DNA from: Lytechinus pictus
Lineage: Eukaryota
DNA: 64,000 nt
Direction of reading: 5' to 3'
Assembly: GCF_037042905.1 (NCBI RefSeq)
Contig: NC_087245.1
Coordinates: 4,216,001 to 4,280,000, forward strand
The position numbers were made by a program, and so were the translations under genes. Positions 6,227-38,548 of the stretch are shown piece after piece (positions within the stretch are counted from its first letter, which is position 1; every line of letters begins with the position of its first letter). The notes beneath the pieces were generated by a model. That model was given only the letters and a program-made list of their open reading frames with translations, searched no databases and had not been told where the DNA came from.

Positions 6227-6334
6227 TTAAATATCTGTTTCATCAAGGCGCATGATAATGTATCCCTGGAAAGACAGGCTGTCTACCCCCCCCCCTTTAT
6301 TGTCTAAAAGCAGGATAACAATACACACCATTAC

Positions 6335-17077: not shown

Positions 17078-17927
17078 CTATCCCACTATTTCTGAATCGT
17101 GGCGTGACAATGTACAGTTTTGCTCATTAGCTTCTGAACGTTTGTCAGATGGTTTTTCCGATCTAGCAGTTTTGTTGACTGTTGCATACTCGGGTATTGA
17201 AGAAATTGTATTTTCTTTGCTGACTTCATGACTTGTGTCATCAGGAGTTTCGATCAGGGTTGAACCAATCTCTATTTGTCGTGGAGAACTGGCAGGTTGA
17301 GGCTGGATATCGTGATATGTCGGGCAAGTGTCCGCAATAGGACTGCTTACTTCTGAGTAATGGCTACCGATGGGATCTGATTTTATTTCATAATAGTTTG
17401 GAGATAAAGAATCTGTTTGTAAGTTCAATTTATCTGTAGGGTTGTTAAGACTATTATCAGTCATATTTGAACGTTCTGGTTCATCGCAAAGCTTGTTATC
17501 GGTTGAGAAATAATTCTCGTGTTTATTCGATGTTAGATCAATCTTCATCTGTTGGGATTTAAGGGATGCATGTTGATCATGTGATGTTTCATCTTGGGAA
17601 TGTGATTCCATTTCGAAGACATCATAGTTGTTCATACTTGAGTCTCCTTCTCTCCATGATGGTTTGTAAAGGACATTGTCTATGAGTCCGTGCTGAGGGG
17701 TATCAATCGGCGATTCGAGCTCGTATTGATGTGGCTCCGATCGGACATCATCGGCCGATTCGTACAAAACCGTAACACCATTATCGAGATCACTGCTTTT
17801 AGGAGCAGAATTCTTTACAACTTCGTAGTAATTTGGATCTTCATTGATTAAAACGTTCTTCGTATTATGAACCAAGACATCTGATTTGGGTTTATAGCTT
17901 ATTGTGTCATCTTGCTTCATTGCAGAT
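17078..17927 (-). CDS. Receptor B terminal exon, cytoplasmic tail
   Basis: ORF 17078..17974 with acceptor at 17928-17929. Motifs YYEV, NVLYKP, YYEI, SHYSEV, YHDI, YATV. Confidence 0.88.
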
Positions 17928-20900
17928 CTGAATAAAAACAGAAAAGAAAGAGTATCCCTTTGTGACTTATTCAAACATTAATGAATATTGCTGTTGTTGA
18001 TTTGTGTCAATCTTCTACACAAGCGTTCATATGGGGGTTGGGACTATGGACCCTACCCCTCCCCCCAAAAAATAAATAAATGAAATAAAATGAAGCTTAG
18101 GGAAAAGGTAAAGGAAAGTAAAGTAGAATAGAATAGGGATGAAATTTACTTTTTTTCTGAACATTGTATCAAACTTTTTTTTTTAATTGGTATTAACAAA
18201 GATCAAATTTTTGCTACCTCGTTACGCTTGCTCGCAGTTTTTTTTTAATTGCCTTGCTATAGCCATGCCTGACCCCATAAATTTCTTTGGCCCATAACGC
18301 CACTGAATTACTATATTCAATGTTCAAGTACAGTATAATAATTCTGATCATCCACGGACATCGAAAGTTGGGCCTTTGCGTTATACAAGTAACCACCAAT
18401 ATGATTATTGTTATTATTAAATGAATATATATTTTTTGAATTGCACAATATTCTCCGTCAAAATGGAATATCGGTGTAGATACTTACTGCTTTCTTTTAT
18501 TTTTGATGAAGTACATTGCTAAACAGGCTGCCATCAGTACCACAATGCTAACAACGGTCACTGCGGGTGCTACTACCAAAACTGACATATAGGATTAAAG
18601 GGGGGAAACAAGATGGAATGATTGTCTAATGATCCAGATTGTTGGTAAATTCGGATGTTTTCTAGATATTTAAGAATATATAGAATATATTGACCAATGT
18701 ATTATCATCTCGGAAACGAGGTTATGGGTTTTAATGGATGCACTTGGAAGAAGTTCCTGTGACCCCCTGGTCAAGAGAAAGGGTCATTAAATAATACGTT
18801 GGCCATTAAGGGGTACTCCGGGATAAGAATATGTGTATGTAGATAAATAGAGCAAAATTCACAGAGCAAAATGCCGAAAGTTTCATCAAAATCTGATAAC
18901 AAAAATAGCGGAGTTATTGAATTTTGAAGTTTAGCAATATATTGCGAAAACAGTTTTATACACGTTGTCATGAATATTCATTAGGTGGGCTGATGATGTC
19001 ACGTCCCCACTTTCCTTTTTCCTATGATATTACATTAAATCATAATTGTTTCATTTTTTATTCTGAATCAAATGCGTTCAAGGAAACCTAATTTCCATAA
19101 CACCTAATCACTTTTTTAGTCGCGTTATAACCCAACTCTGTGACGGGCCCCAAAATGATAGAATGAAACATTCCATGATACAATAACAGTTTTAATATTC
19201 GTTATGATTATTAAACAAAGATAAAGAAAATCTACTGAATCCTTACAAAGGCAATGAATTCTTTTTAGTCTTACCAATGATAGAAGATGAGCCCGAGTCA
19301 ATGACCATGGTTACAGTATTCAAGCTCGTGGTATCTGAAATAAGTATCAAGTAGATAAATATTATGAAAAAATAGTAAAATCGAAGTAATGTAGTAAAAT
19401 ACATGTAATCTACCGATTATCAAGACCACTTTAAAAATATGATTAGATTAAGATGTTGATGAATGATAGCGATGACGATTCATATAATTTTGTAATGCGC
19501 CATACCTATCTCCCCCGCCCCCCCCCCCCCAAAAAAAAAAATGAAATGGCTTTCGAGTTATCAGGCGTAAAATGTTAGCAATGACTTTAGGTTTGAAGTC
19601 TACTCTATCAAAATAGATTTATCATTAATGAAGGAAAAGTGGTAAAAGCAGTAATGTTAGTATTATCGATTTACCTGTATGAAGGTGAGGTGTCAACGTC
19701 TTTCTTGTCTGATCTGTTGAAGGGTCACTTGTCATTCTTGGTTGAATCGTAATCATATCTGTATGCAATGTTTACATAATACACAGTATTAAATATGGAT
19801 ACATAAATCAATATTTTAACCTAATGCATTTCCCTGATATTTTTCATCGAAATATTCGAACATCTTTATCAAGTTAAAATAATTAGAGTAATATCCATGG
19901 CCCTGGGAAGCGGGGGTGCTGGGGGTGCTGAAGCACACCCAAGATTTTCTCAGGGGGTGCTGCGTGAGTATTATTTTCCAGAGGAAGCATCCCCTGTAAT
20001 TCTGTGTGTCAAATTGGAGAAATGTATTGAAAATGGTCACCATTTTGCAGTGAAAACTTTTTTTTTTGCTTGTTAAATTTACTTCAGCACCCTAGCATAA
20101 ATGTTTTCCAGGAGGACAAAATGGGTTTGAGAACGTCAAAAGACATAGGTTTCAAACTTGAGGCAAGTTTTAACTGTTTACCCAATATGATTTTTGGGAT
20201 ACTTCTTTTTCTACAAAGTTATGTTTCGAGAAAAACGCTCATTTGGACCCCCCCCCAAAAAAAAAATACATGACACAGGTTGTCGGGAAAAGAAGATGGT
20301 TTCATACCGATACATGCAGGAATTGTACCATTCCATTGAAATATATCAGGACCGCCCACACATTGCAAGGCATCATCGCCCATCAGCTGTTTGCCACCAC
20401 TACAATTCGCCCTCACTATGTCACCAAATCGGTACCTTCCATACACGTTCAGATTGACGTCGGAGATCTCGGGGCAGAATCCTACAGATACTGGAAAAAG
20501 GGTATAAAATGGAAAACCATAGGAGGAAGCAGTATCATCAGTGACGGTATTACCATTGACGATCTGTCAGTAACTCTGATAATGAATCCTCTGTTAATTG
20601 CCAAATTGAGACAGTTTCTCTATTTAATAGCACGGCCCGCTGGTATAACAGTTTTCGAAACTGAAGTGGCTACCCTGGGTAAATATACTTATATTATTAT
20701 TATCATTATTATTAATTATTAAGAATGAGAATACGTCATATTTGTTAATGAAACTTAATTGAATTGTCTTCTAACAATACAATTCGCCCTCACTAAGTCA
20801 CAGAATCAGTATCTCCCTTAATTATTCTAATTGACGCAAGGAATCTTGGGGAACATTGGTTGATTATGTTACGGATTTACATTTCATTGCTTCCCAGATA

Positions 20901-23900
20901 AATGTCAAGAAATTGCAAAAACCATTCCAAGCACTTTCTAAATTTATTCAATTCATGGGTTAAAAGAAGTTTTGATTTTTTTTTCCAAACAAATAAATCT
21001 TTTATGTGAATGCTTACCATTGAATACAATATATGAATCCCTCTGTTTTCTTCCGCAAAACTGTTCTGGATTTCCGGTGCATTTTGTGTTACAGACACGC
21101 TCTTTGGATGAAATCGTGAAGTTGTTCAAGCAGTAACAGGTATCACCCCTTTGAGCAGCAAATGAGGCCGATAGATCCATACATATATCAAGACATTGTT
21201 CATTGGTTAATACTTGACTTGTCTCTGAAATATTGATGTGTGGCAATTCAGAAGAGCGAATCAGAAAGCAACCTAAATATCCAGGTTCTGCAGAAGATCG
21301 GATGGAAAACGGCATTGTTATATAAATTCGAAATTCGAAGATATAGTAATATGAGAACAAAATTGTCAATGTTGGTGGGTGCTTAATAGACAAACTTCAT
21401 AAAGCTGTTCGTAATAAGTTACGAACAACTACGAATGGCTAGTTCCCTTTCTTGAGGTAAATTATGCGCACAAACCTATTCAGTTGTGTTGATTTAGAAA
21501 GAAGGGATCACCAGTCGCTCGTAACTTACGAACAGCTTTATGAAACAAATACCAGTTAAATATGACTTAGAGTCACACTTAAATTCCCAGTTACGTGCGG
21601 TATATTAAAGAGTTAAGTATGACTTAGAGGCACACTTAAATTCCCAGTTGCGTGCGGTATATTAAAACACATCAACGTATTGGATTGCCAAGAGGACGAG
21701 CGCTGTATAATGCGTTCCTCCTGTCCTTTTCTTTCAAAATTTTGAATCTCTTGAGAAAAGAAATGGCAAATTTCATGTCAATGATAATCTTTAATTCATG
21801 TTTATAGAATATGGAATAAGTCAGTTACCAGTTACCTTTGTTCTAATGCACGACCATCTATGAGAATAGAATCACAATAATATTTAATGCTAAAATTCAA
21901 ACTTTGAAATTATACCTACTTTGGCACACAACGCCAGCTGCTTCAATTTCGCTACAGTTGCCCAAGCCATCTGAATCACAATCAGGAACTACTAAAAAAC
22001 AATATCACATTGAAAAAGTAAATCTGTAAAATGAATGTCTCGATGAATGAGATAACAACTAATATTCAAGTCAAGTTTTCATGATGATGAATGTTTTGTG
22101 TAACCAGATTCACTTGCAATAGTTGTATGATGTATTATAATTCAGGATGCTATTTGGATGAAAAGAACAAGACAATAATAGGTGATTTGTTGCATGGGGC
22201 TTATACGACCTGAACACAATTATCAAACTGACTGCTTCTTGGGCGTTGTGACGTTGTGAGCTGACTGACCTTGAAGTGAACATCATTATGGGCTTGGCCA
22301 CACTGCCCCAGTCCTCAGACGACAACGACACTATGGTTATTTCAAGAGCAATTTTGACATTCCCCGAAAATAGAGCCAATCAATATATGTGTCTTTTCAA
22401 ATATATTTATATATTTTTTCTAATTTCTTGCCTCAGTTTATATTTTCTGACCTTAGAGAATTCTAAAGTAAGTAATTTTACTAATTATGAATAAAATTCC
22501 TTACAGACCTTAAATTCTTATTAAGACTTGATATTTATGGAAATCAATAGACATTGTAATGGTGGCCACCGGGGTGGCCAGTTGGGCAACGTACCCTTCA
22601 CCCCCTCCCTTCCCGGTACGTATAGGGATCCCATCCAGACAGATGGAAAAGTGGTCCTGGACCATAATTACATATACTACTTTATATATATTTCAGTCAT
22701 AATGCGGGTCATACTCCCTTGTAAGCATGCATGGTAATAGCAAATGCCGTGGGCATTATCTATCTGATTCATACCCCGGTCCCCGGAGAAGAACATTTTC
22801 TATAGACATCTTTTATCCCTAATTGACAAAGAAAAATACTATTTAGATGTGTTACATCAGCAATATACGACGTTACCTAACGTCCTGTTGTCAATGCTGA
22901 ATATATCTGATTGTAGGCCTCTCCCAAATCTGTTATCATCAGGTAGAAATACTGCATGGCGATATTCAAGCTCTTCACATACCCAGTTAGCTTCATCGAT
23001 TGTCCACCTGTCATTAGATACTACAACACCTCTTAACTCTTCACCATCTTCGTCTATTACTGTCGCCTCCACACGGCCTTCGTTAGGCGAACCACCGTTG
23101 ACCAAGTGAACTACGTAGTGACAAATGAATCGAAAAGGGCTCATAAAACGCAATTTTGTATCAGAATGGAGCTTCGAATCAAAGTTTCGAAGTGACAATC
23201 ACAACGGACATTTCATATTTCTGTTTGTTTTAAACATGGACCTACTACAGTATACTCTAGGTCCATGTTTTAAACAAGGTAACAGCATGGGTAGTAAGGT
23301 ACTGTGAACATTTTTTTCGTTATCAATAATGTTTGATAATATGATCAAGGGAATGATGCTCTGAAGAATAATGGCTAGACATTTAATTACTTTGGAGTGA
23401 AATATTGTTCAATACCAATGCAATCATATCCTCTATTTGAATCAGAATATTTTGTTTTGTACCTTCTACTGATCAATGTAGGATCAATCATGTTATCAAG
23501 GAGGTCATTTCCTCTCACTATCGGACAAGGAAATAAAGACAATGTAAGGCTATAGCTTTCTCTATATTTCATGTATTTAGGGTCGAAGTATATAATTACA
23601 TCAACTCTGTTTAGAATTATTAGTGAATGCGTTGTGGAAAACATATTCTTGAATTATTATACCAGCTGGTAATTTAACATATAATTCATTATGATATAGT
23701 GTCCTATAAAAATAATATGAATCTTGAAATCTTAAAGGATGTTAAGATGATTGAGAAATAAGATTAAAGGGTTGAGACCAAAAATTTAGATTTCTGGCAA
23801 AATTGAAATGTCCAGAATTTTCGGAACGCAAGATTGTAATACAGAATTTTGCGCGCGTACCCAAAAATGTGAAATTTAGAATGTTTATATATATTTTCAT

Positions 23901-24287
23901 ATGCCAAGTTTAATGGTTTTATAATGCTTTCCCATGATCTTTAATAAATGTATTAGCATTGCATATTCCTTCATTATTAGGAGGGGAAATCGATCTGTTT
24001 GCTCCCCAATATTTCCAATAGCTAGCGATCGCCCCTTTCACTCCATGATCGACACAATTGTTCAAAAGACATCAATTAAATCATTGATTCTTTTTCTCTT
24101 CATCGCTTGAATATTTTGTGTTGTAGAAATTCATTCCATGCATTCCAAGACTATACCTCATATCAAAACTGATTTTAAGAAATAATGATCATAATTGATA
24201 CTTACATGATGAAAGGATATAGCAATCTGACCAGGCAAAATAACTTGATACCAGATACATCATTGACACGCAATATGATGACTTCAT
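17078..24287 (-). CDS. Receptor B: signal - SRCR - WSC - CCP/Sushi - mucin-like stalk - TM - Tyr-rich tail, ~642 aa
   Basis: Exons 24206-24287, 22877-23110, 21920-21991, 21018-21287, 20308-20490, 19675-19758, 19275-19334, 18488-18581, 17078-17927. All GT-AG and phase-consistent; total 1929 nt with no internal stop. SRCR motifs LVNGG..EGRVE, WT..EA.WVC..L.Y, FG.G, AGVVC. WSC motifs YLGCF, CLDIC, CYC, C..KC.G....CG. CCP motifs C-P..C..L.G...LQC...W....P.C. Confidence 0.88.
18488..18581 (-). CDS. Receptor B transmembrane exon
   Basis: VLVVAPAVTVVSIVVLMAACLAMYFIKNKRK; AG/GTAAG bounded. Confidence 0.85.
20308..20490 (-). CDS. Receptor B CCP/Sushi exon
   Basis: FCPEISDVNLNVYGRYRFGDIVRANCSGGKQLMGDDALQCVGGPDIFQWNGTIPAC; four Cys plus the conserved Trp. 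Confidence 0.9.
20775..20853 (-). pseudogene. Remnant of a second CCP exon (5' half) in the WSC-CCP intron of receptor B
   Basis: Colinear with the CCP exon. Reads FPKIPCVN*NN*GRY*FCDLVRANC against CPEISDVNLNVYGRYRFGDIVRANC. Shares TACAATTCGCCCTCACTA exactly. Confidence 0.8.
21018..21287 (-). CDS. Receptor B WSC domain exon
   Basis: PGYLGCF...CLDIC...FAAQRGDTCYC...CNTKCTGNPEQFCG...YIVF; 8-Cys WSC pattern. Confidence 0.9.
21395..21546. mobile_element. Small inverted-repeat element
   Basis: TTCATAAAGCTGTTCGTAA ... TTACGAACAGCTTTATGAA. Confidence 0.6.
21554..21666. repeat. Tandem duplication of ~57 bp
   Basis: GTTAA(A/G)TATGACTTAGAG.CACACTTAAATTCCCAGTT.CGTGCGGTATATTAAA occurs twice. Confidence 0.85.
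22877..23110 (-). CDS. Receptor B SRCR exon 1 (domain completed by exon 21920-21991)
   Basis: HLVNGGSPNEGRVE...WTIDEANWVCEELEY..A...FGRG. Confidence 0.9.
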
Positions 24288-24600
24288 GGTTATAATTTTT
24301 CCGAACAAGTAGGCTTCTAATTAATGTTCTCAATAATAATTTCACCCATCGATACATTCTCTGCTCAGAAACCGACGATATACATGCATGTACTTCAGAA
24401 ACACGTCAATTTATGACGAATTGTTTCTGTGTAGTGTACGAACATTTCCTTGTATGAACATACAGCACTTTTGATCACTGACTAAAATCTAAGAAATAAT
24501 GCGGATTGTCCACAATTCAAACGGAGAGAAGATTTCATTCAAGGAAGACCAACGAGATAATGCGCTTATCTTTTTTTTTAGTCTTTCTCCTCTGCAGAGG

Positions 24601-24745
24601 TAGCCTCTTGTCGAGGCCCTGTCGGCTGCTTTCCGAGCGAACATGGCAAAGCAAGGGAGAGAGCGCCAGGCCTAATTCGCTTCGCGAATTAGGGAATCCC
24701 TCGCTTCGCTCGGGAAGCAGCCGCCAGGGCCTCGACAAGAGGCTA
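24601..24745. mobile_element. 145-bp MITE with a 9-bp TSD
   Basis: TIR TAGCCTCTTGTCGAGGCCCTG / CAGGGCCTCGACAAGAGGCTA. Perfect TSD CTGCAGAGG on both sides. Confidence 0.9.
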
Positions 24746-24964
24746 CTGCAGAGGCGGATCCAGGGGGCGATAGAGGGCGAAACGTCTGCGACTCCGCGCC
24801 TCTTCTATAATGGCGGTGGGGGAAAAGGGGGAAAATAATAACAAAATGATGAAGAATATTTAGGGAGAAGGAAAAGGGGAATAAGGAGGGAGAAGGAAAA
24901 GGGGAATAAGGATGAAGAAGAGGATAATAAGAAGAAGAGGAGGAGGAGGATTGTTGGTTCGATT

Positions 24965-25160
24965 ACAGGCCATGGCGTTTTCCTTCAGCAAGAAATTTAC
25001 CCACATTGTGCTGCACTCAACCCAGTACCGGTTGGAAGTCATTCCGTAAGAAGCTGTGAGCACCGGAATCGATAGACTAGCGTAGCCGGGGTAATATAGG
25101 AGCGCTTTGAGCACCTAACAAGTTAGATACGTGAGCTATACAAATCCTACATTATTTATC
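24965..25160 (+). mobile_element. SINE/LINE-tail-like fragment (related inverted pieces at ~37470-37627 and ~38017-38148)
   Basis: Shared motifs CACATTGTGCTGCACTCAACCCAG and GCCGGGGTAAT..AGCGCTTTG..CACCTAACAAG, followed by an ATT-type tail. Confidence 0.55.
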
Positions 25161-26962
25161 ATAATATCAACCTATACCTCCATCTACCCCCTCTCTCTTC
25201 ACTCTTTATCCCCTCTCTTTTTAATAAGTGCTTTTTTTCGTTTTTAAGCTTTTCTCTCGTTTAACATTTTCTTTCTCCCCTTCTCTCTCCCCCTCCCTCT
25301 CCTTATATACATTCTCCTCCTCCTCTCCATCGCTTTTCACTATTAAACTTTGTTCTCTCCTACAAAATCTTTTTTTTCTTCATTTGTATGACATGAAATA
25401 GAAGTTCAAAAAACAATATTTAGTATTAATTTGGAATATTACAGTTAAGTAACATAAAATTGAAGACAATTGAGAAAATCATTATAAATAAACGAATAAG
25501 GCAAAATATATATTTCTATTATTTAAAATTTAATTTATCAATAAAGACACAAATATTTTTAAGGCATGTTTTATTGTTTTTACTACATTCCCAACAATAA
25601 CGACATAACAATTTCGAAATGTGCAACAACGAAATTGAAAGTAGTATAGCAAACGATCTAAAACAAATTCTTACTCGGACTGGACGTTACCATGATAATG
25701 GGAATGAATGAAAGGGTAATCTTTTTACCCCTACTCCCCCCTCTTTATGAAATTGGCATGGAGGAAGAGTGGATAAAGAACAGATTTATGGAATACCGAC
25801 TTTAATCATTTTCTTGATCTACACCTGGTATGAAAAGACTATCGACTCGGTATATGCCTACGGGAAGTTCACATTTTTATGAACGAATTAGGATCGTGTA
25901 TGAAAAATACTCTATCTTACCCCAATCACAAACACGTTTTGATGATTTTCTAGGATCTTTTACGAATCTGAAGTGAAAACCCCAAGGGTCGCCCTTCGTG
26001 AAACAGCACATGGGGTCGTCGATTGATTTTTGTAAAACGCTGTGAATATTATCATCGTAAAATATGTCTCGGGTTAGTTTTGGATGCAAATTTTATTATG
26101 TAGTTTCTGAAATACCCGGGACTGATTGGCCGCGGTTGCAAATGAATTAAAGCCCCTGTCCCCCCTTTTCATGATGGGGACTAAAAGTTTCCATATATTT
26201 TTGGTATATGACCTTTGCTTTAAGCAACAAATAGTTTGACAATAATCTATCACAGACGTTCTTTGTAGTGTTATAAATACATAGCACATATTTTCTTTAG
26301 AGCTATTTCAACACCTAAGTATGCATTTAACGGCCACTCCAACTCCTAGGCCTATGTCGTTTCATTCTATATTTCATTTTATGTTTTAGTTATTCCAATA
26401 ACTGGTCCTTACAATATCAACTTTCTCTGGGATAATCAGTCTATATTCACCACTGACACATAAGCAAACCTTTGTATAAAAATATATACGATGATTGTTA
26501 TTTGGAACATTATTGTAGTCTATTTCATGACAGGCAATTCAGTATAAAATTTGATTATAAAATATGATTAAAATGAAAGTTGACAAAATAGAAAAATGGA
26601 ATTGCGATAACTCTAAAGAAATAGATAATTAATAAAATAGCTATGAATTTCAAACAACAAACGACGACTTAAATCTATACCTAAATCCCAATTTGGCAAA
26701 TCGTTTAGCATGCAGGGCAAAACATTTATATGATTAATGATAATCAATTCTTTGTTTCCTCAGAGTATCTTTCAAGATAAATCACACATAGCATATTGTG
26801 TAGACGAAAACAATAGTTAAAATTACCAAAGGTTAGTCTGTATCTTGTAGTTAACATGAAAAGTCGTATTGTCCTGAAATAATACCATGGATTGAGCATT
26901 TCATGAAGAGACGTAAGAGTTGAGAAAACAATGAGAAGACGCAGCAAAAGGATTGATTAGCC

Positions 26963-28399
26963 CAGTGTCGTACCGTGGGTCGAGGCATTGGGGGGCACCA
27001 GCAAAAATTTTGAGTCACTTTTTGTGCGAGCGCGAAGCGCGCTTAAATGCCAGGTATACTAACATAATAGAGACATTTTAAGGACTGTGCCATTAAACGG
27101 ATATGTATCTCACTCATCAAACAACGCGAGTGCGAACACCGAGCTGATTTTTTTTATATTCAGACTTAAAAAAGGGACATTATAAGCAACTTTTTGTAAT
27201 CATGATATGTACCTGTCTCACTATACAAACATTGCGAGCGCGAAGCGCGAGCTGAAATTTTTTCTATATATTGACCCCAAACGGACATTTATGGACTCTT
27301 TTAGGAATTCCCGAAGAGCACACATTTCTCAACATACATGACATAGTCATCTAACATGTCTAACGCGAGCACCAACACTATAAAAATATTGGGTAAAAAT
27401 GTTCCATGAGGGTAATTATGTGTCCAACCAACATTGGGCATTTCTTTTTGGCATTTTTATTGATCCAGTGTGATGAAAATTTTGTTCATTCTTAAGTAAT
27501 TGCTGCTTATTTTTTAACCTTACTGGACAATATGCTTCACGCATTGGGTAAAATACGTACTGCCCAAAATTGGTTGGACACATAATTACCCTAGTCATGC
27601 TAGTGTTGGTTGAAATTTAACCCAATATCTTTTACAGTGAAGCACTTGCTGATTTTGATAATGATTTCAATAAAAATCCACCTAAACACATAAAGCACTT
27701 TTTGTAGTCATATTAATCATGAACATGATACGTATCTCGTAAAATAATGCGAGCGCAAAGCGCGAGCTGAAAATTTTTGAAATTCAGACCTGAAGAGGGG
27801 CATTCGAAGGCTTGTTTGTGGGAATTCACTAAGACCAAGTATTTCACAAACTAAATGATGCGAGCGCGAAGTGCGAGATGAAAAGTTTTAATATTCAGAC
27901 CAGAAAAAATTGACATTTTGACTGTTTTTAGGAAATCATGAAGAGCAGACATATCTCACCAATCCACTGATGCGAACGTAAGCACGGACTGGCCGGGGCC
28001 ATTCACTTTAAGTAGGCCTAGTCATGAAAAAGAAGCATATGTCACTAAATAAAGCAATGATAACTCGAAGTGTGAGGAAATTTTTGGTGTATACTGACTT
28101 GAAAACGGGATGTTTTAGATTAACAGGATTGTTTTTATCTTCAACTGACAATGCGAGCACCAGGAATGATGAACACATAGGCCATATGGCCTACGCAAAT
28201 TATGTTTCATATAAAGTTATGAAAAAATATTTCTTATGTAATATGATATAACATAATATATACAATAATTTCTTCTTCCTCCACTATACGTTTCTCCTTC
28301 TTTCTCCCTCTTTTTCTCCTTTTCCCCCGTTTTTTTTTTTTTTTTTTTTTTTGGGGGGGGGGGCACGTGCCCCCCATGCCCGCCGTAGTTACGCCACTA
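26963..28399. mobile_element. ~1.4-kb non-autonomous hAT-like element with GCGAGCGCGAAGCGCGAGC subrepeats
   Basis: Ends CAGTGTCGTA / TACGCCACTA. The internal motif recurs about every 60-120 bp. No clear TSD. Confidence 0.65.
27376..27639. mobile_element. CACT-terminated MITE (EnSpm/CACTA-like) nested in the 26963 element
   Basis: CACTATAAAAATATTGGG ... CCCAATATCTTTTACAGTG with a 2-bp AA TSD. Second copy at 36878-37131. Confidence 0.85.
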
Positions 28400-28537
28400 T
28401 TGTTTTTATGAATTTAATAATTTCAATATCATTATTATTAATATTATTAATATTCTCATATTGTGAAAGGTACATTATTCAATGAAGAGTAAAACTTTGC
28501 AAGGCTTCTACTCCACTAGCGCAGAATTTGAAATGGT

Positions 28538-29507
28538 TTATGACTTCTTCTGCACAGTGGCGTAGCGAGGAAAGGGTTTGTTCTTTTCAAAGGAAGAAGT
28601 AGCAACATATGTAGAAGGATTCTTTGATGCGAAGTCCCCATCGATATCAACATCGATGTATTCATGACTCGTTGATGTCGGGTCATCTGAGCGAACTACA
28701 AGTCGCTGACCACTACGATCTGAGGTCGTAAGCTCTGAAGCATCGTCGTCGATGCCGTGTACAGAGTCGTATCCAGTGAATTTGGTACGTGACGGAGTGG
28801 GTGCTGACTGAGGTTCGATGTCATGATACCTTGGTCCGTCCGTAACAATGTTCCCTGAAAATAGAGGATCTGCTCCTTCGTAATCGACAGGAGTAAATCC
28901 TGGTTTGATTTCATAGTATTTTCTTGAAGCAAAATCAGGTTGTCTTGTTTGGTTATCAGCAGGTTTGTAGAGTATGTTATCAATCATTTTTCCTTCTTGA
29001 TGAAAGCCTCGAGATGTTTCTCCGTCTGGGTATGCATACTCGGAATCATTCGGTGGAAGATCGTTGCCGTTCGGTGATTGCCGAAAGTTATCCGATGCAT
29101 GAATTTGTGTGTTTCCCGCGTTTTCGACTGGTTTGTAAAGAACATTGTCTATGAGTCCATAGCGAGGTGTGTCATTTGGTGAAGTCTGATTGTGTTTCTG
29201 TAGATTCGGATCTCTTCGGATATTATCGGCCGGTTTGTACAAAATATTGTCAATCAGTCCGTACTGAGATGGATTTTGCGATGAGCCCTTATCAGGTTGT
29301 TCATTCGTATCTCTTCGGACATCATCGGCTGGCTTGTACAGGACATTGTCTATGAGACCATCAGTACCTATAATTGTGTCTGGTGCAAGTGTATTTGGTT
29401 TAACTTCATAGTAACTTGGCCCATCGTTGTTGGGAATTTTGTGCATACTATAACTCTTGTTGTTGAACTCCGATTCTCGACGCGTCGGTTCTGGTTTCAT
29501 ATCAGAT
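28538..29507 (-). CDS. Receptor C terminal exon, cytoplasmic tail with four IDN(V/I)LYKP repeats
   Basis: ORF 28538..29542 with acceptor at 29508-29509. Ends RYATVQKKS. Confidence 0.9.
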
Positions 29508-32500
29508 CTACAGAAAATGAAAATCAGATAGGGACAAATCATTCTTTTTTTCAGATGATAGTCTTATTTAAATTACTTTCAAGGGATAAAAGACATGAAT
29601 AAATGATGTAGACCTGAATGGAAAATTAATACAAGCATTTGAAATTTGTGTAAAAATTATTCAGCAGGCAATGTAAACTAATTCATTTTGATATTTCCAG
29701 GAATAATACACTTTTTTTTTGGGGGGGCGAGGTGTTACAATACTTACTCTGTCTTTCTCATTCTGTTGAAGTAGAAGAATATGGATGTAGCAAGAACCGC
29801 TATAATCACCACACTGATAACAGACACAGTTATTGGAACTAGAATTAACAAGGGAAAAGAAACAAGTTATGGATACGCCTCAACCTTTCAAGATATGTTT
29901 ATTACTTTTTATTATTTTCATTTATTCGTGTTTTTCATACTGCATGACCATACTTCACAGTAAAGGCAACACTGTTTTGAACATGATTGTTTCTTCATCA
30001 ATCTAATAAGTTATTATATTGATATTTTGTTTTGATATCCTAGAACCAAATTTTCCATACTGATTAATTGGTTGGCTCATTGACTGGCAGGGAAGTGTAA
30101 TTATATCAAAAAGTTTCTATTAAGGTGTCATCTGTTACTGTAATAAATGACATTGATGCCTTCAATCGTATTCAATTAATAAAGATCAGTTTTTTCCATC
30201 AATAATTTTTATTTCCTAGTAAAACTCAATAATGAATAGCTATGTACTGTTAGCAAACCAACCATAATCAGGAGTCCGACTTAATATCACCTAATATCGT
30301 TCAACTTCTTTTCGAAAATTTGGGCAATCATCCAAAAATAAATAAGTAATCAATTTGGGTTTCCTTAGAAATTCCACAGTTTTATCCCCTCCCATACGTG
30401 ACAGTTTTTGGTGTAGATCAAATATTACACAATCATTCTCTTACCAGCTAAAGATTTGGAGTCCGATCTGGCTCCCATCCCCATACCGCTTACCGTTGAC
30501 ATGGTTGGTGAAATATCTATGTAATGGAAAAAAAGAGTTCTATTTATAATTTTTATTACAAAACAAACTAAAGTCGATTTTGGGAAGAGGGTTTTCATCG
30601 GCCGTACATGTCGATATTTAGATCGTGTTAACAAAGTTACCAGATTAGTTGACAATAGTTATAAAAGCACAACGGATATTAACATAATGCTGGTATTAAT
30701 GAAACAGGGAAGAGTAGTTTAAGAATTATTATTCATGAGAAGAAACGCAGGCCTTACATTTTGACATTTTTATGGCAATTTTTTTCTTTCTGTTGGGCGT
30801 TTTCACAGCATAAATACCAATGAGAGTGGCAGTGATGCCAATCAGAAGGGCATGGCACTGAATTCAAGCCTTGGGAATCCCATTCTCGATCAAAAGATAA
30901 AGGTTTATGCTTATATATTCATTTGATTAGATTGATTATTGATAATCACTGTCATCCTAATGAACCACGTCATCCTATTTTGATTTGTTACTAATCACAT
31001 ATTGTTTTACCTGTCATTATTTCACCTCCTGTACCTGTTGGTGTGAGTGTTGTACCCATTCCTATAGGCCGAGTTATTGGAGAAATGGTAACTATTGGTC
31101 CTACTGTGGAACCATCTGATGATAGATAAGAAATATTTTTCTGTTTTTATGCTCAGGCGCAGATCGGGGGAAATGGGGAACGTGCCCCTTTATTGAGGAT
31201 TCCTTGTTACGTTTTTTTTATATAACTAAAAAAAATTGCTTCCTGCTTGTGGTGATATGTTTTTTTCAATTGTATTTTTGTTCTGTATCCACCCCTGATC
31301 ATGCTTGAATGAAAACGATGTATCTGTTCCTTTTAAATATTCATCTAATTGGATTTAACCCTACATACTCGATTTCCATTCTACTTATACATTTACATCA
31401 CCCTTTTGTCATAATTTTATATCCCAACTCTAAAAGAAAATTTTATATACTTTACGCCTTATTACTTTGCTCTTCTTCTTTAAAAAAAAATCTGTATGAT
31501 CTTGATCCTTGTCTGAGCTAGTCATGTATCATGAAACATAAATCACATTTCTTCCAGTTTATTTTCAATAACATTTTTCAAAACTATTCGTTGCAAACAG
31601 GCACATCGTAAGCCTAAGGCTTAAGCAAAAAAAAAGAGAAAGACATGGGTTTCGTTCATGCGCCATATTCAAGATTTTAAGATAAACCTCATGCATGAAA
31701 ATTTCGTTAATTGAAAATTTTCAAAAGAAAAGGATGAATTTACTTCATACCTACACATGTCGGAATGGTACCATTCCATTGAAATACATCAGGTCCGCCA
31801 ACACATTGCAAGACAGCATCGCCCATCAGCTGTTTGCCACCACTACAATTCGCCCTCACTATGTCACCAAATCGGTACCTTCCATATACGTTCAGATTGA
31901 CGCCAGAGATCTCGGGGCAGAATCCTACATATACTGAGGAAATGAATATAATATATTTTTTTAAATAAATGAATAAACGCATTGACCGTACATTTACCAA
32001 ATTGTTATGCTCTGTAACGAAACACACGTGATGGCTACTAAAGGTTTATGACACGGGTTCAATGCGCTCGATCTTTAGAAATTCCACTATCAATAATTGT
32101 GATATCAATTTCAATTCAATTCAAATTCAATTTATTCTTGATAATAATAAAAACGTCATCAAATTGTACATTCGTATATATAGAAATATCATTACAAGAA
32201 AAGGAGGGCAACAAAAAGTTTACACTTGAAAATAAGAAGCCTCCAAAGAAATGACCATTCAAAAGAATGCACGCTTTATCATTTTTCAGAGATTCATTGC
32301 AATTTATTTTAAGAATAGGGGCAAATAATTTGGTAACACCTGGTCCTGTCATACATTATGAATGTATACCAACGATGAAGAAATAAGTTCGATAAACATG
32401 TTTGTATAAATTCTATACACGCAACTTAAAAACCTCCGGTCCTCTATCAAATTGAAATCAATAATAAAATATAAATCAAATCATGGTACATGTATATAGA

Positions 32501-35500
32501 GACATAACGTGGTTCTTACCATTAAAAACTGTAAACACATCTCGTCCCCTACCACATAGCTGTCTATCATTACCAGTGCATGGCCTGTTGCAACCCTCAT
32601 CTGCATCATTTAAAACGGAAGAGTCATTGAAGCAGAAACACATTTCGTCTCTCTGTGCAGCAAAGAGAGTTCCATCTCCCTGACATAGCAGCAGACATTC
32701 TTCGTTGGTTCTTTTTCCATTTTCTTCTATTATTTTGACACTATTCCGTTCGGGACCGGGAATTCGAAAACATTTGGGTTCTGTATATAAGATAAAAAAA
32801 TTAAAATGTCACCTAATCTTCAAAAGTTATATAATTCAACACTGTCCCTCAAAATGCAAATTAGTTGTTCCACATGGAAATATAAAAAAAATCATAGAAA
32901 TAATAACACAGACATAATAACTTATTCAGAAGTACTATGAATTTAGATTGAGTGATTTACTGCTATGAATACTTCATGTTGAAAGTTTGTCGATTTAGAT
33001 TTTTCGAACATAGTTTTTCAAATCATTCATACTCTCAAAATATGCCTGACCACTTGGTAAAGATTGTGATCATCATTATTTCCAAATATGTGTTAAAATG
33101 TTACAGAATTTGATTACTCTAATTTCAAAGCCATTATAGAAATATTATTTCGTCATCAAATTACTACAGAGAAAAAAATGCTTGATATTCGCTTATCTAT
33201 ATAACTTATTGAATCCAAAAACCATAGGTATCTGAGCGAGTGCGGCACTATACAGGAATAATGCTTATTTCACCTTTGTTGTCGCATTTGTTTGACTGTT
33301 CCATTAGAAATATACTTCGCTACCTGGGGCGGATCCAGGATTTTTCGAAAGGGGGACACATTTTCCCGAGAAAAAAAATTGACAAGCAAAAAAAAAAAAA
33401 AGAAAGGGGGTTTAACCCAAAATTTAGGGTGTTTCGTCCATGAAAAATTTTGACAAGCCCTCCCCCCCAAAAAAGGTCTTCACTTTCAAAAGGGGGGCAC
33501 ACTTCTGTTTAAACGACATTTTTACATTACAGATTTTTATTGTGCCTCTCAAAAGGGGGGAGGCGGGCCGGCTGTGCCCCCCTCCCATGGATCCGCCAGT
33601 GTTCGTTACTAACCATAATTTCCAACATAACATTGTTACATTGCTTGCCTAATCTGATTAATTACTTAACCATCTTGCATAAAAATGTTTCCGAATCATA
33701 ATACGAGTGGGGTGAAGCAATCGAAAAATAAGCGTTATTATTGAGGAAATTATATATACTTTCTGAGGGGTAGTCCTAAGAAGAAAAGGAGTTTTATCAA
33801 TATTTACCCAGGGGCGGATCCAGCTTTCGCCAAAAGGGGGGGGGGGTCGAATTATTTTCACCTATATTTCCCCCGGTCGGCCACTCAAAGTTGATGTCCT
33901 GAAAAATTGAATATTCTGGGCAACGTTTGAGATCCTGAACAAGATCATAAAGATGCGTATGTGGTTATATACTTACTGCGAATGCAAGCAGAAATTTTTA
34001 ATATACGTTCTGGTCTGATCGAAAAGGGACCTGTTAAGGTCTACCGTGAAGACGATGCATATTTCAACAATCAAATAATGCGAGCGCGAAGCGCGAGCTG
34101 AAAAGTTTTGACAATACAACCTAAAAATTGGACGTTCTAAGCACTTTTTACAATCATGAAAAGGATAGGTACGTAACTAAACAATGCGAGGGCGAAGCGC
34201 GAGTAGAAAAAAAGAAAGTTAGACCTAAAAGCGGGACACTCTATTCATGTTTTGTAAATCATGAAAAGAATGGGTAATTGGGAACCTTCCTAACATTAAT
34301 AATGCGAGCGTGAAGCGCAAGCAGAAATTTTTTGATATTCTGATCTGAAACGGGATAATCTAAGAATGCTTTGATAAAGAACATGCTTGCGCGTGTTTTA
34401 GATTTAGACATAGAGGGCCGGATTCTGAAGTCAGGTTTAAAGGTATTGTTTAACTTTGTGAGGAGCCGATTAAAAAAATTCTCAAACCAAGATGAAACAT
34501 GTGTACAAGTGCATGTATTAGAACTAATAAACCCTGAAAACAACTATTATTGAGAATGAAAAGCTAAAACTACAAGGCAAACCCCGATTTTGTAAATAGG
34601 CGTCTTATAGACGCCTAAATAGTACACATAAGTGTATGGGATGAAATTAAGATGGTGTTTTCGGTCACTTTATATTTCAATTTTTGAAGCACTAAATAAT
34701 TATTTTCGAACGCAATTTTTTCTGGGCTTCTTTTTTGTAACATATCACAGACACAGGTGACAAGTGTGACCTTCTAGCTCAGATTTTTTTAAAGTCAAAC
34801 CAATGTTAACCAATCACTTTAACTTAGACCATGGTCTAACTCTGTGCTAAAGTTATGGGGAGCCAAAAATTCAAAAATTGTGTGCTATTGTATATTTCTT
34901 ATGTTAAATATTTTGCTTTCATAATGAAGAAAAATACATCAAAATACTTAAGTCATCATTCCCAGACAAATATGAACAATTTGGGTGTCATATGAGTTAA
35001 TAAATTTGATGTGTTCTGTTACTAAGGATTCGTGCCCCATTTGGCTCTTAACATGCTGAAGCACTAATTCAAGCACTGTTTGTGAAAATTGTGAAGTGGA
35101 TATGGATCGAACTTAATAAATGATGCGAGCGCAAAGCGTGAACTGATATTTTCTTTATTATTATTTTGACCTAGGGCTGGGAGTCTGGGACTGTCATATG
35201 AAACATGATGAATATCTTCCTATTCTTCTTCCCATAAGCGCGACATAAAACTTGCCGATATTCCCTTCTGAAAAAAGGGACAATTTAATTATTAGGAATT
35301 CATTAAAATGTTATTATCTTGTTTATTGATATAATACATTATGAGAGCCCGAAAACTGATGATATTGAGTCCTGGAAACTAGACATTTTAAGCACTTTTG
35401 TAATAAATAGGACGCATGGGTTAATATCGCGATCCGAAATTTTTGATAAACTGTCATGAAAAGGGAATTTTAAGTAGTTTCTTATAAATTTATATACTAC

Positions 35501-38500
35501 TCACCAATGAAAATTCGAGTGCGCAGCGTTAGCTGAAAGGTTTTGATAATCAACCATGAAAAGGGATATTTTGAGAACTATTATGGAATACACGAACATA
35601 GCAGGTAATTGACAAATCAATAATGCGAGCGCGCAGCGCGAGCTGTAAATGTTGATATATCAATAACACGGACATTTTACAGAGCACTTTTTGAAAATCA
35701 ATTTGTAAATCAAATAAACTAATGAAAGCTCGATGTCCGAGCTGAAATATGTTTTGTATATTGACTTCAAAACTTAATATAAGCTTCATATTAGCCTATT
35801 TATTGAGCAAGATAATCTCATCGAACATGCAATGCGAAAATTTTATATAGTGACACGATATTTTTTATTGTCCAAGTCTTCCCCTCGCCTTACTCCTCTT
35901 TTTTCCCTCTTCTTACTTTTCCTTTTTTTTCTTCCTTTCCCCTTTTTCATTTTTTGACTAAGCCATTAGGGGGCCCCCCTGGATCCCCCTATGTTTACCA
36001 TCATCCGGGCCATCATCTTACTTTTCTTACTTACTATTACATGTAACACCTGCGGTCTGTACGTTCACCTGGCTGCAGTCAGCAACAGATTCTCCGCTTT
36101 CGTCATCACTGTCTCCCTCATATACACAAACCAGTGTAACTGTACACAACAACCACAATAAAAAGTGAATGTAAGTTGTTTTTTTCCAAATGTAAATAGA
36201 GTACCGAAGTATGACGTCATATGATTTTTAATTTTTTGCATATCCGCATTTCTTTATACCACATTTCGGTGGAGCAATACACCCAAAATCAAAATTGGGT
36301 GGGAATCGGTCAATGGGGGCCCAATTAAGATATGACCTCATGAATATAAAATAGCCCAATTGAAATAATTGTTTATTGGCCTGAGTCTAAATTTGTGAAC
36401 TATGTCGGCCAATATACATTGATTTCAATATTATTAACCATCTAGGTGGATGAAGAGTCTCCACTTCACCCCCCCCCCCTCCATCTGTTCTACAATTCAT
36501 GATAGGCCGGCCGTTTTAGGTCACAATAGCCAAGTAGTCATGATCTTCTCCGATTAAATGTTTTCTCAAAATAATCAGCATAATTACCATTGTTTGGGAT
36601 ATCTTCAATTCCGAAAACTTTCGAGTGTTGCCCCCTGCCAAATCTCGAATGACCAGGGGCAAAAATAGCATTGGGAAAGCCTACAATCTGACAAACCCGA
36701 TCTGCTGTGTCAATTGTCCAGCCAATGTCCGATAAGACTCCATATTCATCCTCCTCATCAATATTGACCTTGACTTCAATACGTCCTTCATGAGTAGAGC
36801 TCCCATCCACAAGGGCAACTGATAGTAGAAGAAAATAGATAAATGACCTTAACATCACACAAAAATTTAACTACGTACACTCTAAAAATATTGGGTGCTC
36901 CATGAGGGTACTTTATGTGTCCAACCAACATTGGGTTGGACATCTTTTGGGCATTTTTATTTATCCAGTGTGATGAAAATTTTGCCCATATTGCTGCATA
37001 TTTTCTAACCTTACTGGACAACATGCTTCCCGCATTGGATAAAATACTGACCAAATTGGTTGGACACATAATTACCCTCGTGGTGGTAAAAAATTTACCC
37101 AATCAATATTTGCAAGATTTTTTTTACAGTGTATACATTTAGCCCAGCTATGCAATAGTTAGGTCCATAGCACAACCTCTATCCGCTGCTGGAGGTCACA
37201 TTGAACAGTTGAAGGAGGGCGACACTGCATGGGACACTGCATTATGTGCGGAAACCACAAAATGTCATCTCCGGGAAGTGTAGTGGGCAAATAAGTTTTG
37301 TGATGACCATATACATAGGGATTTGTCAGAATGTATGTGGTAGAGTGTCAGATCGAACGTCGGATTGCACGCTTTAAAAACAATTTAGTAAAGGGCTAGC
37401 AGGGTGCAATTGTTATCTCAGTATGTTTCACTATTATTCTAGTCATGTTTGTACTATAATACAATCTTTCGATCCTGACGAGAATAGCGCGCGCCCATCC
37501 ATCTTGTTAGGTGTTCAAGACGCTCCTATTACACCAGCTTTAATTATGTTGCTCACAGCTATTTGATGAATTATCAACCCTTTACACATCATTCACCTCA
37601 CCTGGGTTGAGTGCAGCACATTGTGGATCAATATACATGTAGTAAAATGTATGAATCTAGAAGTTGCACCCAGCTTACTACTGATCGAGTCAACTTGATT
37701 GATTTGTTTTTAGAGAGTTTGTTTTTACCGGCAGTTTCGTATTCATGATCATCACATTTTAGTAAATCTTTGGTCACGTTGGTAGGCTATATTCAGCAAT
37801 GATGTTCTTATATAATTCTGTGTATCTGAAACATTTTCAATATCGAATTTTTTTCTCAATATATATATATACATATATATATATATCACAGAACTAAAAA
37901 AGGTTTATAGGTCATACATAAAAACTAAGAATACACTCAAAAGGGATGTGAAACAATAAACCTCTTCACAATATTGTTACCAATTTACGTTTGACTAATG
38001 GCCACGTTTTTTTTTAAATAATAATAATAGTTGGATTTATAAAGCGCTTTTTGCCAGAGGATACAAAGCGCTGCTATTATTACCCCGGCTTTAGCTCGAG
38101 CTACCATCACCGGCGCTCAGTGCATGCAAGGAATTACTCCTGCCGGGTATATCTCATACAGGGATATCTCATACAGGGAACTCATATCAGTATCTTTTAT
38201 TCATGCACCAATCTACAGCACTGCTTTACAAGGAAATACATCAGAGTAAATGAATTACGTAATAAGAGAGACAACGAGGAAGAACTTCAATTTCATCGTG
38301 CATTTGCGTCAACTCGGTGCAGAACCCCCACCCCCCGAAATTATTTCGACCCTGTTAAAAAAGAAAATGACTTGAAAAGGTGAATTAGCAGTTTGAATTA
38401 TTTGTTTTGTGCAGTATTCCACTACTAAATCTCTGACTAAAATGAAAAAGGTTCATTTATACTTACAACCTGAAATATAGTATCCGTCTGAAGAAAGCCA

Positions 38501-38548
38501 TAAATTCGTTTCCAAAATCATTACAAACAATAAACAAAATGATTTCAT
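28538..38548 (-). CDS. Receptor C: signal - SRCR - WSC - CCP/Sushi - mucin-like stalk - TM - Tyr-rich tail, ~699 aa; paralog of B
   Basis: Exons 38467-38548, 36588-36818, 36035-36139, 32520-32780, 31751-31933, 31011-31115, 30445-30516, 29748-29838, 28538-29507. GT-AG and phase-consistent; total 2100 nt. Same exon count and phases as B; the first exon is 82 nt in both and starts MKS. Confidence 0.88.
29748..29838 (-). CDS. Receptor C transmembrane exon
   Basis: VPITVSVISVVIIAVLATSIFFYFNRMRKT; AG/GTAAG bounded. Confidence 0.85.
31751..31933 (-). CDS. Receptor C CCP/Sushi exon
   Basis: FCPEISGVNLNVYGRYRFGDIVRANCSGGKQLMGDAVLQCVGGPDVFQWNGTIPTC. Confidence 0.9.
32520..32780 (-). CDS. Receptor C WSC domain exon (missed by the ORF track)
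   Basis: Hand translation: PKCFRIPGPERNSVKIIEENGKRTNEECLLLCQGDGTLFAAQRDEMCFCFNDSSVLNDADEGCNRPCTGNDRQLCGRGRDVFTVFN. Confidence 0.9.
33324..33601. mobile_element. hAT-like MITE
   Basis: Ends CTGGGGCGGATCCA / TGGATCCGCCAGTG. 8-bp TSD TTCGCTAC/TTCGTTAC. Confidence 0.75.
33809..35991. mobile_element. ~2.2-kb hAT-like non-autonomous element with GCGAGCGCGAAGCGCGAGC subrepeats and nested insertions
   Basis: Ends CAGGGGCGGATCCAG / CTGGATCCCCCTA. 8-bp TSD TATTTACC/TGTTTACC. Confidence 0.75.
34441..34818. mobile_element. TTAA-flanked MITE nested in the 33809 element
   Basis: TTAA|AGGTATTGTTTAAC ... GTTAACCAATCACT|TTAA. Confidence 0.6.
36588..36818 (-). CDS. Receptor C SRCR exon 1 (domain completed by exon 36035-36139)
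   Basis: ALVDGSSTHEGRIEV...WTIDTADRVCQIVGF..A...FGRG. Confidence 0.9.
36878..37131. mobile_element. CACT-terminated MITE, copy 2
   Basis: CACTCTAAAAATATTGGG ... TTTTTACAGTG with a TA TSD. Body matches 27376-27639. Confidence 0.85.

Follow-up and report, generated by a model that had tools for sequence, protein, structure and literature searches.

The window, i.e., the whole stretch of 64,000 nucleotides of Lytechinus pictus DNA that was analysed, contains two neighbouring genes, here called B and C, with the following coding regions.

17081..24287, minus strand: coding span of gene B (LOC129278720), from the exact spliced mapping of NCBI L. pictus protein P0010
24287-24206, 23110-22877, 21988-21920, 21287-21018, 20490-20308, 19758-19675, 19334-19275, 18581-18488 and 17927-17081, minus strand: the nine coding exons of gene B
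28541..38548, minus strand: coding span of gene C (LOC129256018), from the exact spliced mapping of NCBI L. pictus protein P0008
38548-38467, 36818-36588, 36139-36035, 32780-32520, 31933-31751, 31115-31011, 30516-30445, 29838-29748 and 29507-28541, minus strand: the nine coding exons of gene C

The exon boundaries are taken from the fit of P0008 and P0010 to the window, which is exact and gives GT/AG introns. B and C are tandem paralogues in the same orientation, 11.4 kb apart in L. pictus, and each encodes a predicted type-I membrane protein with the domain order SRCR, WSC, CCP, stalk, transmembrane (TM) segment and long tyrosine-rich tail. In L. pictus B, Pfam places SRCR and WSC above threshold and Sushi below it. 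Both tails are long and have the motifs IDNVLYKP, YYE(V/I)K, YHDI(E/Q)PQ and YATV in common, and no charged residue was found in the TM segment of either protein. The orthologues of L. variegatus and Strongylocentrotus purpuratus were used for comparison, giving three species in total, and the order of a TM2-DnaJ gene, then C, then B is kept in all three. The B/C duplication is older than the Lytechinus/Strongylocentrotus split; the two echinoid lineages separated about 45 million years ago. Regarding extra species, Logan contigs with tail homologues were just 0.9–1.6 kb long and carried no CCP exon, and a CCP-only query returned no short fragments.

The product of exon 5 is a module of about 60 residues on one exon, with four invariant cysteines and an invariant tryptophan in the alignment. 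Its scores against Pfam PF00084 are 17.5 bits for L. pictus C and 16.9 bits for L. pictus B (cut-off 20.7), and the S. purpuratus C module passes the cut-off with 24.3 bits. A profile search against the PDB gave 41 matches, nearly all of them CCP-module proteins (CR2, CR1, factor H, DAF), with the DAF match covering the whole module at E = 1e-6. An AlphaFold2 model of the segment, built from six sequences, was too poor for use (pLDDT 45).

The two CCP exons and the high-identity block around them occupy the following positions.

20308..20490, minus strand: gene B exon 5, CCP/sushi module, 183 nt, phase 1-1, from the P0010 mapping
31751..31933, minus strand: gene C exon 5, CCP/sushi module, 183 nt, phase 1-1, from the P0008 mapping
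20301..20510, minus strand: full extent of the high-identity block on the B side, i.e., the exon plus 7 nt and 20 nt of intron, from self-BLAST and flank tests
31744..31954, minus strand: full extent of the high-identity block on the C side, from self-BLAST

The original prediction, based on a hand count, had described two 183-nt CCP exons with about 14 differences and an identical run of roughly 70 nt, lying among strongly diverged exons and introns that do not align, and this description is borne out throughout. Exon 5 of B and C differs at 14 of 183 positions (92.3% identity), the longest identical run being 70 nt, from position 20374, whereas the remaining exons reach 33–58% nucleotide and 27–45% amino-acid identity. 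Self-BLAST of the window returned a single block, 20301-20510 against 31744-31954 (90.5% over 211 nt), and no comparable B/C block elsewhere in either gene. Intron similarity is marginal up to 30 nt from exon 5 (p = 0.007–0.02 in Lytechinus, none in S. purpuratus) and absent further out, the alignment ending within about 30 nt. Exon 5 of L. pictus C has 98% identity with its counterpart in L. variegatus C and 95.6% with exon 5 of L. variegatus B. The GENECONV analysis that had been proposed was run as a GENECONV-like permutation test, with a local match/mismatch score of negative drift over all aligned sites; it identified exon 5 as the high-identity block at p ≤ 1e-4 in each of the three species, which supports exon-limited homogenisation. 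An initial score, computed on polymorphic sites only and with a zero-drift penalty, was ill-posed and was rejected (p = 0.008–0.22, with fragments spilling across exons). As a separate observation, genomic BLAST in S. purpuratus gives a second exon-sized B/C block, at exon 1.

Synonymous divergence sets the CCP exon apart as well. Between B and C its dS is 0.188 in L. pictus, 0.127 in L. variegatus and 0.166 in S. purpuratus, compared to saturated values of about 2.1, 2.4 and 0.95, respectively, for the other exons. Between genera the CCP dS amounts to 0.46–0.57 in all four comparisons, orthologous or not, which is three to four times the within-species paralogue value. For a short exon with about 43 synonymous sites, compared in three species, the synonymous differences of each paralogue pair are still fewer than the between-genus rate predicts (binomial p = 0.0002–0.003). 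Of all exons, the CCP exon also shows the lowest dN; SRCR, WSC and the tails have an omega of about 0.5 when the two Lytechinus species are compared. Within exon 5, the central 18 codons (16-33) are slow at synonymous sites between genera, with a pS of 0.175 versus 0.40–0.49 in the flanks. Thus, part of the 70-nt identical run may stem from slow evolution and not from copying, and some constraint at the nucleotide level or a low rate of mutation has a share in it.

The slow core and the low dN speak for an explanation without any exchange, in which purifying selection that includes synonymous sites (splicing enhancers, an embedded element) keeps the exon near-invariant. We regard this as very improbable, since the whole-exon dS between genera is several times that of the paralogues as given above, nine synonymous substitutions are common to both paralogues within a lineage, and the orthology tree is rejected for this exon. 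Nor is there a trace of an RNA element, with no Rfam match within the window and RNA folding of the exon no better than that of shuffled sequences (z = +0.46).

The maximum-likelihood trees of the different exons conflict. In the CCP exon tree the four Lytechinus sequences group together with 100% support, whereas the trees of SRCR, WSC, stalk/TM and tail all separate the genes into one B and one C clade, also with 100% support. AU tests go in the same direction: they reject the orthology tree in the case of the CCP exon (delta lnL 30, p = 1.2e-5) and the lineage tree in the case of SRCR, WSC, stalk/TM and tail (p = 1e-9 to 4e-3). At the level of single sites, 13 CCP positions are common to both paralogues within a genus and different between genera, 9 of them synonymous, and no CCP site supports a B-versus-C split. 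The per-exon dS values and the trees with orthologues were both checks that the original prediction had put forward, and both favour exon-limited homogenisation: in L. pictus a CCP dS of 0.19 stands against saturation elsewhere, and only the CCP exon clusters by lineage, all others clustering by orthology. That prediction had also said what would speak against it, namely a CCP dS similar to that of other exons or an exon equally conserved at synonymous sites between distant species; the CCP dS is unlike that of the other exons and, given its three- to fourfold excess between genera over the paralogues, the exon does not show such conservation.

Could the pattern be an artefact, either of assembly collapse or of B and C having arisen by independent recent duplications in each lineage? 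Nothing but the CCP exon pattern itself favours this, the same structure is found in three independent assemblies, and the one-to-one orthology of B and C across genera (other exons, trees, AU tests, synteny) refutes it, so that we give it next to no weight. Taken together, the dS contrast, the conflicting trees and the shared sites lead to the conclusion that the CCP exon was homogenised independently in both lineages.

The most likely reading is that the exon was copied between B and C in two or more urchin lineages, with short gene-conversion tracts as the most probable route. From the directly observed dS contrast, conflicting trees, shared synonymous states and exon-sized block, we infer conversion, and not another kind of exchange, as the molecular mechanism. 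In our opinion, it is highly probable that short-tract non-allelic gene conversion homogenised exon 5 separately in the Lytechinus and Strongylocentrotus lineages. Outside exon 5, the other eight coding exons and the introns have all diverged to saturation. The tracts would be confined to exon 5 because it is the sole stretch still similar enough to pair, homology setting their limit. Strong purifying selection on the CCP may have both slowed its divergence and allowed copying between B and C to do no harm, and every conversion event would renew the identity that the next event needs. The B/C mismatches concentrate at the ends of exon 5 and the core is identical, as expected if tracts nest inside the exon. 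No conversion tract clearly reaching into an intron was found by the flank tests in the three species; such a tract would directly prove DNA-level exchange and speak against selection on the protein as the cause. With regard to GC-biased conversion, the CCP GC3 (0.41–0.48) shows no clear excess, lying inside the range of the other exons (0.17–0.55).

The ending of the block at the exon borders might also be accounted for if spliced RNA or cDNA had served as the template for conversion. The block does end 3–20 nt from the splice sites in all three species (genomic BLAST), and the second block in S. purpuratus is exon-sized too. However, DNA-templated tracts limited by missing intron homology would look identical, and neither intron loss nor co-conversion of adjacent exons is seen; such a template seems to us very improbable.

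Intron 4 of gene B contains one more feature that bears on the origin of the shared exon.

20765..20852, minus strand: decayed partial copy (5' half) of the CCP exon with in-frame stops (nhmmer E = 4e-12, HMM positions 16-103)

This remnant is 72–78% identical to the live exons and has an orthologous copy in L. variegatus B; nhmmer did not detect it in gene C or in S. purpuratus. Its position about 285 nt upstream of the live B exon, its presence in both Lytechinus species with none detected in S. purpuratus, and its branching next to the live Lytechinus exons in the tree would suit a one-off exon replacement in Lytechinus, in which a CCP copy was inserted beside the resident exon and the resident decayed into 20765-20852, without recurrent conversion. 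We think that such a transplant is unlikely. On both sides of the live B exon the intron sequence is B-orthologous, and not C-like, all the way to the splice sites, the remnant spans only the 5' half, and it is older than the B-C coalescence (72–78% versus 92–95% identity). Moreover, S. purpuratus is equally homogenised with no detectable remnant, and homogenisation in two independent lineages makes a single event insufficient. A search with the CCP region for a third donor locus returned, among proteins of 384–1223 aa, just B and C of the three species. The original prediction had left the choice between gene conversion and exon transplant; conversion is supported, and the transplant is unneeded and fits more poorly than recurrent conversion.

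As to the age of the conversion, the Lytechinus CCP dS values are 0.13–0.19 for paralogues and 0.08–0.10 for orthologues, which gives the last homogenisation in this genus roughly the same age as the separation of L. pictus and L. variegatus, or a slightly greater one. The homogenisation had been called recent, and that word is justified only in a relative sense. Within Lytechinus, AU tests do not distinguish the orthologous arrangement (p = 0.14) from one with L. pictus B as outlier (p = 0.86). L. variegatus has a second copy at a distance of about 0.8 Mb; its introns match those of the first at 91–100% identity, and it probably represents a haplotype left uncollapsed. This copy differs from L. 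variegatus C (LvC) at four CCP sites, just one of which matches the B state, and no clear polymorphic conversion tract was seen between the two haplotype-like copies. An older version of the L. pictus B protein has G at a residue where the window encodes D.

A constant/variable design with the CCP as a putative dimerisation or co-receptor surface shared by both proteins, as had been suggested from the start, may apply here, the one point in its favour being the lowest dN of the CCP exon. It is a further step to suppose that homogenisation was selected and not just tolerated, with B and C docking a common partner (a co-receptor or each other) through an identical CCP; judged from sequence comparison, this would be possible but rather doubtful. 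If it were true, exon-confined conversion would have kept the CCP surface in step in separate echinoid lineages while the distal SRCR/WSC domains and the tails evolve quickly, and the pair would be an invertebrate equivalent of paired-receptor co-evolution, with a constant stalk module as its target rather than a ligand-binding domain. Being both the most constrained part of the B and C proteins and the part in common, the CCP gives functional studies in L. pictus a concrete place to begin. We also see here a well-controlled case of single-exon concerted evolution, with three genomes, conserved gene order and opposed, supported trees for an uncharacterised SRCR-WSC-CCP receptor pair. For annotators and phylogeneticists it is a caution, as exon-scale conversion can mislead trees built from single domains of the large SRCR repertoire of echinoids.

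Like the members of the expanded SRCR superfamily of sea urchins, B and C are SRCR-containing, multi-domain, tandem genes, and Sushi and WSC are among the commonest partner domains of S. purpuratus SRCR proteins (PMC10855680). The terms "gene conversion" and "concerted" are absent from that survey, and in the literature searched no paper names any of the six B/C loci. The CEACAM1-like paired receptors of mammals resemble B and C in being neighbouring paralogues in which one extracellular-domain exon is near-identical by gene conversion and the rest differs. In CEACAMs, however, the homogenised exon encodes the N-domain, a membrane-distal, ligand-binding Ig-V, whereas in B and C it encodes the membrane-proximal CCP and the distal SRCR and WSC are diverged to saturation. 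CEACAM partners also carry opposing ITIM and ITAM tails, while B and C have the same tyrosine motifs in two long tails and uncharged TM segments, with no opposition of signalling parts. Concerted evolution by gene conversion between adjacent paralogues is also found in Siglec-5/14, Siglec-11/16 and KLRC (NKG2), where it is the ligand-binding region that is reported to be affected (PMC5701461, PMC4042635, PMC3210942). Those are activating/inhibitory pairs of vertebrate Ig or C-type lectin receptors, and the converted part is described as the extracellular or ligand-binding region, in contrast to the single small module near the membrane in B and C. The B/C case involves no new mechanism or kind of system; it is a new example of a known process, and its closest precedent is found in the CEACAM and Siglec paired receptors.

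The full-length proteins were retrieved with the tail open reading frame of gene C as query, and their names were provided by follow-up searches. Both are L. pictus proteins and map exactly onto the window with GT/AG introns, which identifies the window as L. pictus DNA, and the boundaries of exon 5, which is of phase 1-1, coincide exactly with those originally predicted.

Gene C, minus strand: LOC129256018, protein P0008, 699 aa
Gene B, minus strand: LOC129278720, protein P0010, 641 aa
Coding exons, nine in each gene: signal peptide; SRCR (two exons); WSC; CCP; stalk (two exons); TM; long tail
20308-20490, minus strand: exon 5 (CCP) of gene B
31751-31933, minus strand: exon 5 (CCP) of gene C

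Exon 5 encodes a module with four cysteines and one tryptophan, FCPEIS...WNGTIP(A/T)C. The SRCR and WSC domains score above the Pfam threshold, and Sushi (cut-off 20.7 bits) reaches ~17 bits in L. pictus and 24.3 bits in the S. purpuratus C ortholog. A PDB search with a profile of six CCP segments matched almost exclusively CCP-module proteins (CR2, CR1, factor H, and DAF), and an AlphaFold2 model of the CCP, made from a shallow alignment, was unusable (pLDDT 45). For gene C, isoforms 33-35 residues shorter are annotated, P0007 (664 aa) in L. variegatus and P0017 (666 aa) in L. pictus. P0007 omits the first stalk exon (exon 6, 31011-31115 in the window), so that its CCP runs straight into the second stalk exon.

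The original prediction was that exon 5 is nearly identical between the two genes amid diverged exons and introns, and direct comparison agrees with it: both exons are 183 nt long and differ at 14 positions (92.3% identity), the longest identical stretch being 70 nt, from 20374. Self-comparison of the window yields one block, 20301-20510 against 31744-31954 (90.5% over 211 nt), besides which the only B-C matches are a weak one between the tail exons (70%) and a third, partial CCP-like piece at 20775-20851. The genomic block extends past exon 5 by only 3-20 nt, and in a four-way alignment the intron sequences pair as orthologs, B with B and C with C, up to the splice sites. As predicted for the flanking introns, the B-C similarity in Lytechinus, measured against random intron pairs, is no more than marginal over the first 30 nt and is gone farther out; in S. 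purpuratus, there is none in the first 30 nt, and two farther bins are marginally above the null. The proposed GENECONV check was performed as a local-score permutation scan of matches and mismatches in the coding alignment, which selects exon 5 in all three species, with 0 of 10,000 codon shuffles equaling the observed score.

In L. pictus the mismatches lie at exon positions 4, 29, 31, and 47 and then at 118-182, flanking an identical core (70-nt gap among 14 mismatches, p = 0.012), which is the pattern expected of tracts nested inside the sole alignable stretch. Part of the identical run may be due to constraint or a low mutation rate at codons 16-33 (VYGRYRFGDIVRANCSGG), because these are slow between genera too (pS 0.175 versus 0.40-0.49 in the flanks). 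The paralog pS is 2.3 to 6.7 times below the between-genus pS in each of three segments of the exon. The Rfam scan of the window gave no family, and the folding of exon 5 RNA is no better than that of shuffled sequence.

The orthologous loci used were L001 and L002 of L. variegatus and L003 (B) and L004 (C) of S. purpuratus. The order TM2-DnaJ gene, C, B and the same nine exons are found in all three species, with a spacing between the CCP exons of 11.4 kb in L. pictus, ~10.1 kb in L. variegatus, and ~16.9 kb in S. purpuratus. The TM2 and DnaJ domain gene that adjoins gene C in the window lies at 49494-51908 (plus strand).

Per-exon divergence by Nei-Gojobori (CCP exon; other exons)
B vs C, L. 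pictus: dS 0.188 (dN 0.051); dS ~2.1 (dN 0.65)
B vs C, L. variegatus: dS 0.127; dS ~2.4
B vs C, S. purpuratus: dS 0.166; dS 0.95
Lytechinus vs Strongylocentrotus, four pairings: dS 0.46-0.57; dS ~0.8-1.6
L. pictus vs L. variegatus orthologs: dS 0.099 (C), 0.221 (B); dS 0.08-0.10

The proposed per-exon comparison thus sets a B-C dS of 0.127-0.188 in the CCP against 0.95 to ~2.4 elsewhere. Equal conservation of synonymous sites between distant species, the alternative raised at the outset, does not fit the between-genus CCP values. These four values are equal for orthologous and non-orthologous pairs, and every within-species paralog pair has fewer synonymous differences than the between-genus expectation (binomial p = 0.0002-0.003); therefore, exon 5 was homogenized after the genus split, separately in each lineage. 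The common ancestor of Lytechinus and Strongylocentrotus lived ~45 million years ago (PMC11586663). The between-genus CCP dN, 0.12-0.14, is the lowest of all exons, and omega between L. pictus and L. variegatus is ~0.13 for the CCP and ~0.5 for the rest of the gene.

The maximum-likelihood trees conflict in the way foreseen. The four Lytechinus CCP sequences form one clade, whereas SRCR, WSC, stalk/TM, tail, and the combined non-CCP partition each separate a B clade from a C clade, all with 100% support. By the AU test, the CCP exon rejects the tree joining orthologs across genera (delta lnL 30, p = 1.2e-5), and SRCR, WSC, stalk/TM, and tail reject the tree grouping paralogs within genus (p 1e-9 to 4e-3). 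At thirteen CCP sites both paralogs of a genus are fixed for a state that differs between the genera, and no CCP site was found dividing the B genes of the three species from their C genes. As nine of the thirteen are synonymous, protein-level convergence is ruled out as the cause. Homogenization of the CCP exon, the main interpretation proposed, is supported by the dS contrast, the conflicting trees, and these shared synonymous sites.

Two further observations concern S. purpuratus. Exon 5 of C (L004:15557-15751) is 195 nt rather than 183 nt, with a 12-nt in-frame insertion repeating the adjacent YGR-coding bases (YGSRYGRY). Exon 1 (signal peptide) is a second exon-sized homogenized block in this species only (L003:9991-10090, L004:9991-10090), with 84% B-C identity over 100 nt versus 52-53% in Lytechinus, ending no more than ~10 nt from the exon borders.

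Judging from divergence, the last full homogenization in Lytechinus dates to around or before the pictus/variegatus split, because paralog dS (0.13-0.19) is somewhat higher than ortholog dS (0.08-0.10). Three nonsynonymous B-C differences are kept in both Lytechinus species (D-A vs A-V; I vs V); selection may shield them, or they may just be outside the tracts. They fall at exon positions 118, 121, and 147 (20371-20374 and 20344 in B; 31814-31817 and 31787 in C), in homogenized surroundings. Two interleaved sites join L. pictus B to L. variegatus C, and L. pictus B has seven private states, five in the last 17 nt and three matching S. purpuratus B. This mosaic is suggestive of two or more small exchanges around the time of speciation, with small counts and an AU test that does not separate the alternatives. 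A second L. variegatus TM2-DnaJ/C/B copy lies ~0.8 Mb off (L009, L010; CM031015.1 ~91.90-91.94 Mb; LOC121428590, LOC121428595). It is probably an uncollapsed assembly haplotype and not a real duplication, since its introns are 91-100% identical to those of the first, and no clear polymorphic conversion tract distinguishes the two.

Intron 4 of gene B contains a degenerate copy of the CCP exon that covers only its 5' half and has internal stop codons (20765-20852). The orthologous remnant is present in L. variegatus B; none was detected in S. purpuratus, nor in gene C. Its 72-78% identity to all live exons and its branching beside the live Lytechinus clade indicate that it predates the last homogenization and arose within the Lytechinus lineage. 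The remnant shows that the CCP exon has been copied or relocated as DNA. A simple exon transplant, the other option initially considered, gains no support from it, since the introns touching the live B exon are B-type.

The window also contains the following features, of which the ~600-nt copies and their relative probably belong to a family of short non-autonomous transposons.

1-376: tandem array, period 54 nt, units ~95% identical
5637-6234 and 48278-48878: two ~600-nt copies, 88.7% identical, with inverted ends inside
18840-18963: weaker relative of these copies, within an intron of gene B
61098-62366, minus strand: open reading frame of 423 aa with many acidic and lysine runs

The searchable literature holds no mention of the B/C loci, and the terms 'gene conversion' and 'concerted' are absent from a recent survey of invertebrate SRCR genes (PMC10855680). 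We think that the CCP could conceivably be a surface common to B and C, the one point in favor being that its dN is the lowest among the exons. Exon-scale homogenization between neighboring receptor paralogs is on record for CEACAM1-like pairs, and it is described similarly, in the accessible part of the sources, for Siglec-5/14, Siglec-11/16, and KLRC. Exon 5 of B and C is a further case of this documented process. Unlike in the CEACAM, Siglec, and KLRC cases, the homogenized module is the membrane-proximal one, the distal domains are the diverged part, and the motifs of the two tails are shared, not opposing.
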